Positions 39,701 through 42,700 of a stretch of DNA of 64,000 nt are shown here, in pieces (position 1 is the stretch's first letter; the number at the start of each line of letters is the position of its first letter). The translations under genes and the position numbers were made by a program. The notes under the pieces are model-generated. The model did not search any database and had not been told where the DNA came from. It saw only the letters and a list, made by a program, of their open reading frames with translations. Origin of the DNA: Octopus sinensis (Eukaryota); assembly GCF_006345805.1 (NCBI RefSeq), contig NC_042997.1, forward strand, positions 112,778,001-112,842,000. Direction: 5' to 3'.

Positions 39701-42700
39701 TTAATAAACAATGATAAAAAATAATCTTATTTAAGGTTTAAAATTCATATCCCCATATCTAAAAAATAAAGATCTCTAAAAAAGTACTGCTGTCTTCATT
39801 TCTGAAAATAAACACTGAAAAATGGTATAGTATCATTTCTAAAAATATCCAAACAACTACTACTTCTATCCACAGGAATGTATATAAAGGACAAAATTTA
39901 ACCAGTCAACCACAGCTGAAACCAGTGAACACAACTGTCACCACCACCACCATATGAACCTGAAGATTGCATAAATGCAAGAAAGTTCAATAAGAATGAA
40001 CATTTAATATTTCATTTGTTCAGTAAGAAGAGACAATTAATACTTCATTTCATTTCTTTTTACTGTATCATATCTTATGTATTATATTAATATTAAAAGA
40101 TTATAAATAAAACGTGAAAAATGGAGTTGGAATTCTTTTGAGTAATATATTCTTCTATACACAATCATACAAACCCCTTTGTATGTATATATATGTATGT
40201 ATATATATATATAATATATATATATATATATATATATATATATATATATATATATATAATACATACACACACACATATATATATATATACACACACACAC
40301 ACACATACATACATATATATATATATATATATATATATATTATATATATATACATATATATATACACATATATATTCATATTATACTTTTGAACATAATG
40401 CAAAAGATATTACCTCTGGAAGGTTAGGGTTAATAAATTTTGCCTATCACAATGTATTTATATTAAGTGATTACGTGATTGACCAGACTATTGCATGCTG
40501 TTGTACATCGCTGGTCACAATGCACTTCACATCATTTTTAGCTCTCAAATGATGGCTAAAACAAGCAAGTCAACTTTCCTCCTGATTGGAAAGCTCATCC
40601 CAGGGGACCAGTTCGTTGCAGGGTGAACCCATTCACAACTGAGTGGACTGGAGCAATGTGAAATGAAGTGTTTTGCTCAAGGACACAATGTGCTGCTCGG
40701 TCTGGGAATCGAAACCGTGATCCAGTGACCATGTCCCTTCACATTTACATTAAGTATGGTACATAAGTGGCCATGTTAATCTAATACTGCATATAACAGA
40801 TTTTAACCTGTGTGTTTATGGGAATATTTTCATAGGAATGTTATCACGCTTTACAGTTCAGTGACTACCATTAAAAAGTGGGGTTAACCTGACTGTGAAA
40901 ACACTTACTCAAGCAAATCATTTTGGAAATGTAATAATAAGTGATAGCAAGCTGTGAACTACAAAATCCAGACTGACACAGAAAATTAGGCACAAAAGAA
41001 TATGGGGGGGGGGATATTAATTGATAAAGAAGAAATATAGCTGATTAAATAGAGAAATATTATTTTTTAATAACTCTGTATTTAAAAAGAAGAAAAAAAC
41101 TTACCTCCTCTTCAACCATGACAGGTAACAAATTTTCTAAATAACAGAACAAAATTTGGGCTTGGACAAGATCTAAATGTGGAGGATCTTGCAGAGGTTT
41201 GTATCCTTCAACCTGATATATTCATTATTGTCAAGGAAAGAATATAAGATAAATGCTCTCATAATTTGTGGCTTCTCTAATAAAATATAATTAAACTCAG
41301 TATTTAAAAAAATAAATGAATAAATAAATTCTGTATTTACAGATTGCCACAAAGAAAACAAAGAAATTATAACCATGTTGTTGGGAAGCAAGCTTCTTAC
41401 CATATGGCCACTCCTGCGCCTATAGTAGAAGACATTTGCTGAAGGTGCCATGCAGTGGGACTGAACTTGGAACCATATGGTTTGGAAGCAAGCTTCTTAC
41501 CACACAGCCACGCCTGCGCCTATGTAAGTTTTCAGATTTCAGCTTCTTCAAGAATGTCTTGTACAGATGAACTAAAAAGGAAGCCTCTTAATAGTCACTC
41601 AATCTGTTAGACATAGTAACCAAAATTCCTTCAGATCACACTCTACAACCATAGTCCTAAAGATACAAACAGATGGACTGGTCATGGTTGGCATACTTTT
41701 GATCATACATCTGCTGTACTTAATGATGCCAGATCTGCATTTAAATAAACACAAGAACTTCTTATACAAGAATAGTGCCCTAATTAGTTGTCCTTGTAAC
41801 AAAAACCACTCAGTGCCTCACATCCATCAATTTATGAATTTACCAAATTTTCATTTTAATGCTTATTTTATGATCAGGTATTTCTATAAAATAATAGCTA
41901 ATATAAATTTGGCTGGTTGGGTGATTTCTCCAATCACATCACACTTTCATGATACAGAGAAAAGGTGGGGAGAGAGAGAGAGATACATACAGAGAGATAA
42001 CATAAGAGGTACAGGATGAATACACATGCTAGGCTTGGTGGAATGCAATGAATAAAAGAACATACACATACAGATATATCATAGTAACAAAAAACACACA
42101 CACACGTACACATTTCATTTGATATAAATGACAGACAAGAAATATCAGTTGATAAAGGATATCTAAGAGGTATTGCCCCAAAATTAGCACGAACATTTTC
42201 CGACATGGATAAACTGACAGCAGGGAAATAGGCATATCCTGGGCCACATCTGACATTATTGAAAGCCTCTCCAAGACATTTCCCATTCCTGAATTTAAAA
42301 AGAAAAATCACATACATATATCTATTAGTTCTTCAACAGTTTATATATAAATGCATTTGCTTTGCAAGATTCCTCATGTGAAACTGTGTCTTGAAACAGA
42401 TATTGTTATATTTCAGAATAGCCAAATAAATACACGCACTATATATATATACATATATATACCAGTATACCCTGTTCTCACCATCTACACCGGATACGCC
42501 CTACTCCCTCCTCCTCCCCCCACTACCCCTTCTCCTCATATGCTTTCACTGTGAAAAGACAAGCTGCTAGCGCCATAGCTCATCAACTGCCCACCGATCT
42601 TACGCTTCCTCCTGACACTGCCTCAATCCGACCATCCCCTTTTAGTACCCTCCCGCCTCGTAATATCCTACGTTTTTATTTCTTACGAACCTACACCAAC

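Follow-up and report, generated by a model that had tools for sequence, protein, structure and literature searches.

An RNF123 orthologue with a predicted AT-AT minor-class intron at the end of its SPRY domain

Where does an intron end that carries the 5' splice site and branch site of the minor class and has neither an AC nor an in-frame AG at the expected distance? This question is raised by a gene on the minus strand of the window (here, the whole 64,000-nt stretch of Octopus sinensis DNA that was analysed), for which eight exons were mapped. The initial annotation had described a perfect U12 donor and branch site at the end of a SPRY domain, had predicted splicing at an AT 11 nt after the branch A, and had suggested that competition with a CAG 7 nt downstream, which leads to a frameshift and a stop, could act as a switch between productive splicing and NMD. 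Both motifs were read again in the sequence (Table 1), the AT is supported by orthologues, selection and spacing as the probable intron end, and the comparison lends no support to the switch. Splice junctions are marked by a slash throughout, and plus signs give distances from the branch A.

Table 1. Features of the two minor introns of the gene and their surroundings (positions in the window; splice-site use is predicted)
Feature	Position	Strand	Details
Predicted minor-class intron, termini AT...AT	41220..42162	-	943 nt
U12-type 5' splice site ATATCCTTT	42154..42162	-	intron begins at A42162; preceded by AG
U12 branch-site sequence TTCCTTGAC	41230..41238	-	branch A at 41231
3' terminal dinucleotide AT	41220..41221	-	+10/+11 from branch A
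Upstream exon	42163..42288	-	126 nt; SPRY domain end; encodes (R) + 41 residues + AG
Downstream exon	41105..41219	-	115 nt; A + 38 residues; then gtaagt
Exonic AG (CAG/GTT)	41213..41214	-	+18 from branch A; out of frame with the phase-2 donor
Second minor intron, canonical AT-AC	25511..28249	-	phase 2; GTGCT/ATATCCTTTG ... TTTCCTTAACtgttgttAC/ATTTGAC
Exon before second minor intron	28323-28250	-	
Exon after second minor intron	25510-25408	-	

The donor sequence fits /RTATCCTTT at nine of nine positions. The branch-site sequence, 925 nt past the 5' splice site, is a perfect U12 match (TTCCTTRAY). The 11-nt segment between the branch A and the intron end (caataatgaat) is purine-rich and A-rich, with no polypyrimidine tract, and the 3' junction reads ...tgaAT/ATATCAGGTTGAAGG. 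Direct reading of the sequence between branch site and exon identified no AC there. As words in 64 kb the motifs are no rarer than chance: the donor 9-mer has two matches (1.28 expected) and TTCCTTRAC has three (1.54 expected). Their significance therefore comes from placement and from recurrence in orthologues, not from 9-mer rarity. The donor motif stands exactly at the conserved coding end and the branch motif exactly 11 nt before the next conserved coding block, inside the interval of 10-15 nt ahead of the conserved exon start. Joint placement of the two by chance has a probability of ~1e-9, by our arithmetic from per-position rates. We assign the intron to the U12-type (minor) class, as the first of two minor introns in RNF123.

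The upstream exon ends in ...CCTCTTAG (longer form ...AATTTTGGGGCAATACCTCTTAG), its last, incomplete codon being AG, so that the intron is in phase 2, and the downstream exon starts with ATATCAGGTTGAAGGATACAAACCTCTGCAAGATCC (also written ATATCAGGTTGAAGG). The Pfam SPRY match (E=6e-20) stops at NFGA, four residues ahead of the intron. The SPRY domain is followed by the conserved PLRY..GY.PLQDPP, and both minor introns and their flanking codons lie at the human positions. Because the intron codon and its flanks match the human RNF123 listing, we identify the gene as the orthologue of RNF123/KPC1, a ubiquitin ligase. A sequence search of the PDB with the 80-aa junction peptide gave zero matches, and a protein search of 5.8 billion sequences recovered only four ORF fragments, none of them transcript-derived or annotated from the species. 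The two ORFs of the window in which the donor and the acceptor lie were looked up by exact match, and neither is on record.

In human RNF123 the intron at chr3:49699106-49699467 is classed as U12 AT_AC by de Wolf et al. 2021 (PMC8280824, Datasets EV1/EV2). Its flanks are GTCCTCTGCG/ATATCATTTT (ATATCA...) and ...GGCTTAACTCTGGCAC/CTACCC (CAC/CTACCC), interrupting PLR/YP, and its retention rises from a PSI of 0.046 to 0.455 in ZRSR2-mutant cells, a delta-PSI of 0.41 (PMC8280824). The window intron lies at the same codon and is orthologous to this ZRSR2-responsive intron. The two share gene, codon (PLR/Y) and phase, and both are A-type U12 introns. The human intron has an AC end, and both its 5' site (ATATCATTT) and its branch site (TGGCTTAAC, 9 nt before the 3' end) are degenerate, whereas the window intron combines perfect 5' and branch motifs with an AT end at 11 nt.

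The second minor intron of the gene has canonical AT-AC termini. Its flanking codons, H-V-L/F-D, match N-V-L/F-D/E at the human RNF123 U12 GT-AG intron chr3:49700710-49701490. A second frame before this intron (NVFEFDLG...), which would imply an AT-CA end, was considered and rejected; the frame that was kept fits the human N-V-L/F-D. The canonical second intron serves as an internal control, from which it follows that minor-splicing signals are maintained in this gene. At both RNF123 minor introns the intron subtype differs between the window and human.

The closest relative found (L001; ENA ERZ21867824, ctg74420l) is a 22.5-kb contig with six orthologous exons, reached via a genomic fragment (P0004) that runs from the same exon into ATATCCTTTT. 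Amino-acid identity to the window is 90% over 80 aligned junction-spanning residues and 84-100% per exon over the six exons; for the upstream exon (L001:10118-10243) it is 93%. The L001 intron reads AG/ATATCCTTTTTT ... TTTACCTTAACaatgggttAC/ATATCAAGTTGAAGG and ends in ...ggttAC. It shares with the window the 5' motif ATATCCTTT, the exon start ATATCA[A/G]GTTGAAGGATA and the branch-to-3' distance of 11 nt, but ends in AC, is longer (3.6 kb against 0.94 kb in the window) and has ACCTTAAC as its branch site, as does L033.

Scanning JGI metagenome contigs with an alignment of five sequences added 34 loci. The vertebrate-like L033 and L034 carry CG/ATATCCTTT ... ACCTTAACttgtgcctAC/, which is AT-AC at 11 nt. 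The terminal dinucleotide is AC in L001 and in L033/L034, at the same spacing as in the window. L035 has AA/GTATCCTTT ... AG/, a U12 GT-AG intron, and L036, with the acceptor CTTCTTGACtctgagttAG/, probably has another. L031 and L032 have donors GTAGGT or GTAAAG and pyrimidine-rich CAG/TAG acceptors and are U2-type. The site lacks an intron in L002-L028, which come mostly from gutless-worm-type metagenomes; two further fragments (P0001 and P0003) also read straight through the junction, and a transcript origin is possible for these. The contigs of L029 and L030 end at or just past the junction. Viral contigs scanned for the exon-start pattern gave 16 matches, all by chance, and none encodes the exon.

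Since L001, L033/L034 and human RNF123 are all AT-AC at this site, the comparison shows an ancient intron whose ancestral form is AT-AC and dependent on the minor spliceosome. The window thus carries a derived C-to-T transition at the last intron base (T41220). Across animals this one intron position appears to display every known fate of a minor intron: AT-AC (human, L033 and L001), AT-AT (the window), U12 GT-AG (L035 and probably L036), U2-type, and loss.

To locate the 3' end, every last intron base from +6 to +25 was tried for frame and spacing. The ends that keep the frame are TG (+8), AT (+11), TA (+14), CA (+17), GT (+20) and GA (+23); AA at +10, AT at +13 and +15, and AG at +18 are out of frame and meet a stop inside the exon. 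The spacing from NFG to GY is nine residues in 28 of 28 intron-less relatives, and only the AT at +11 yields nine (AIPLRYQVE). This site falls within the optimum of 11-13 nt (PMC3584512) and is the first of three tandem ATs, in the context aATATATc. Purifying selection on the flanking exons is strong: over six exons shared with L001, dN/dS is ~0.03, with pN 0.058 and pS 0.70 (saturated), and the set includes the exon whose frame hangs on the 41220/41219 junction. Sequence and frame point only to a41221-t41220 as the terminal dinucleotide, with T41220 taken from one assembly. The AT at +11 is thus supported by an exon start and spacing shared with orthologues, by selection on the frame and by invariant residue spacing, and we put the probability of productive AT-AT splicing at 41220/41219 at about 0.85. 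The predicted spliced junction is CCTCTTAG/ATATCAGGTTGAA, that is, CTTAG joined to ATATCAGG.

We predict the course of splicing from established knowledge of the minor spliceosome. U11 and U6atac would recognise ATATCCTTT at 42162, and U12 would pair with TTCCTTGAC. How far a 3' site lies from the branch A (optimum 11-13 nt) would largely decide whether it is picked, with the last base mattering little. A C-to-T change at 41220 would have turned the ancestral terminal AC into AT, after which CTTAG would still be joined to ATATCAGG and the frame kept. Non-canonical termini support U12 splicing, often with lower efficiency, and the choice of the U12 3' site is error-prone (PMC3584512). Fidelity may be lower here than with a unique AC, because further ATs (+13 and +15), an AA (+10) and an AG (+18) lie nearby, all out of frame, and slippage to these sites is plausible. 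It is unlikely that the choice is spread over +11, +13, +15 and +18 so widely that a substantial fraction of RNF123 transcripts, which might vary with the tissue, is frameshifted and degraded. If true, this would amount to lineage-specific control of RNF123 dosage arising from one base change.

In the proposed switch, the ratio of the AT to the CAG at +18 or to the neighbouring ATs would be regulated, setting productive RNF123 transcripts against NMD. Use of the CAG would indeed shift the frame and reach a TAG at 41175-41173, inside the exon. The terminal base is weakened and sits within ATATAT, the AG follows 7 nt later, the competing sites are out of frame, alternative 3' site use is reported at U12 introns (PMC3584512), and non-canonical sites are enriched in alternative splicing. 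However, L001, L033 and L036 end in a canonical AC or AG and yet carry an exonic AG at +18/+19. It is there because of the Tyr-Pro/Gln-Val codons, and therefore was not gained together with the AT. In addition, +18 lies outside the 11-13 nt optimum, and the literature is split on whether alternative U12 3' site use reflects regulation or error (PMC3584512). We consider a regulated switch unlikely.

Very unlikely, in our estimation, is a T at 41220 that reflects a base-calling or assembly error, or one polymorphic allele, in an intron that is really AT-AC. The other AT-type orthologues that were recovered all have AC ends, and the T of this one assembly has no independent assembly on record against which it could be checked. 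However, a substitution error at a given base is, by our estimate, several orders rarer than the ~1% of AT-AT among U12 introns. Runs of AT dinucleotides mostly suffer indel errors. Such an indel would disrupt the exon start, but this start is conserved and intact. A polymorphic T allele, for its part, would still be real.

The other ends in the series that keep the frame open near the branch site, TG (+8), TA (+14) and CA (+17), would give PLR-I-YQ, PLS-QVEG or PLR-VEG. They are extremely unlikely, as the NFG...GY spacing becomes 10, 8 and 7 residues, where each of the 28 relatives without the intron has nine, and the conserved Tyr is lost in two of the three. None belongs to a recorded class of minor 3' termini save a single mouse GT-TG (PMC1557818), +17 lies above and +8 below the 11-13 nt optimum (PMC3584512), and in orthologues the exon begins at the +11 site. 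Splicing by the major spliceosome from a cryptic phase-0 GT donor in the read-through (e.g., TGT/GTGTGT near 42100) to CAG/GTT at 41213 has a negligible probability: the upstream frame is open for 76 codons into the intron and CAG/GTT is in frame with a phase-0 donor, but the product would gain ~20 non-conserved residues where relatives have exactly nine between NFG and GY, the read-through is unrelated in L001 (P0004), and perfect U12 motifs conserved to vertebrates would be left unexplained.

Productive splicing at the AT would place this intron in a class that is already known, as a further example and with no new mechanism. Non-AC/AG ends of U12 introns are rare, as the initial annotation had stated: six human and six mouse AT-AT introns are recorded, ~1% of human U12 introns (Sheth et al. 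2006, PMC1557818). Among the non-canonical minor termini of animals, AT-AT ranks second in frequency (Larue and Roy). Switches between AT-AC and AT-AT are found between human and mouse in ERCC5, Gpaa1, Slc9a8 and Zc3hdc6 (PMC1557818). In control cells only 8% of the AT-AT intron of human KCMF1 is retained, and this intron is sensitive to ZRSR2 mutation (PMC8280824). Documented cases (human ERCC5, IK and KCMF1; mouse Gpaa1, Slc9a8, Zc3hdc6 and Cul4b; PMC1557818, PMC8280824) resemble the window intron in their U12 5' and branch motifs and 3' AT, and several are likewise one base from an AT-AC orthologue. They differ in lying in other genes, in mammals, and in being transcript-backed, whereas the window intron is known from comparative sequence.

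For annotation, tools limited to GT-AG, GC-AG and AT-AC introns would break or frameshift the gene model of RNF123 where the SPRY domain ends, probably by choosing the CAG; we predict 42163/41219 as the correct junction. The intron would also provide a natural example of the minor spliceosome tolerating a changed last intron base.

The second exon of the pair starts with ATATC(A/C) (41215-41219), which copies the five bases that open the intron (ATATCC, 42158-42162). This copy at the junction is common also to L001, L031, L033 and L036. The Arg-Tyr-Pro codons AGA TAT CCx themselves resemble a U12 5' splice site. With ATATC shared, placement of the junction from RNA-seq reads is ambiguous by up to 5 nt (up to six positions), and therefore the AT-AT call rests on the 5' motif. 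One may speculate that the ATATC copy is a trace of intron origin. Within the U2-type intron of L032 (L032:1021-1910), both exon ends recur with their splice sites as additional tandem copies of degenerate sequence, comprising three donor-side exon copies (two with a CAG/GT donor) and three copies of TTGCAG/GTACCC.

An Rfam scan of the window gave nothing above the gathering score, including for a dispersed repeat with the core GTGGTAAGAAGCTTGCTTCC. This repeat looks like the head of a tRNA-derived SINE, and the window has 10 copies of it where 0 are expected. Two neighbouring ones fall in the predicted AT-AT intron (41384-41403 and 41484-41503), and eight are elsewhere (e.g., 30098-30117 and 48955-48974).
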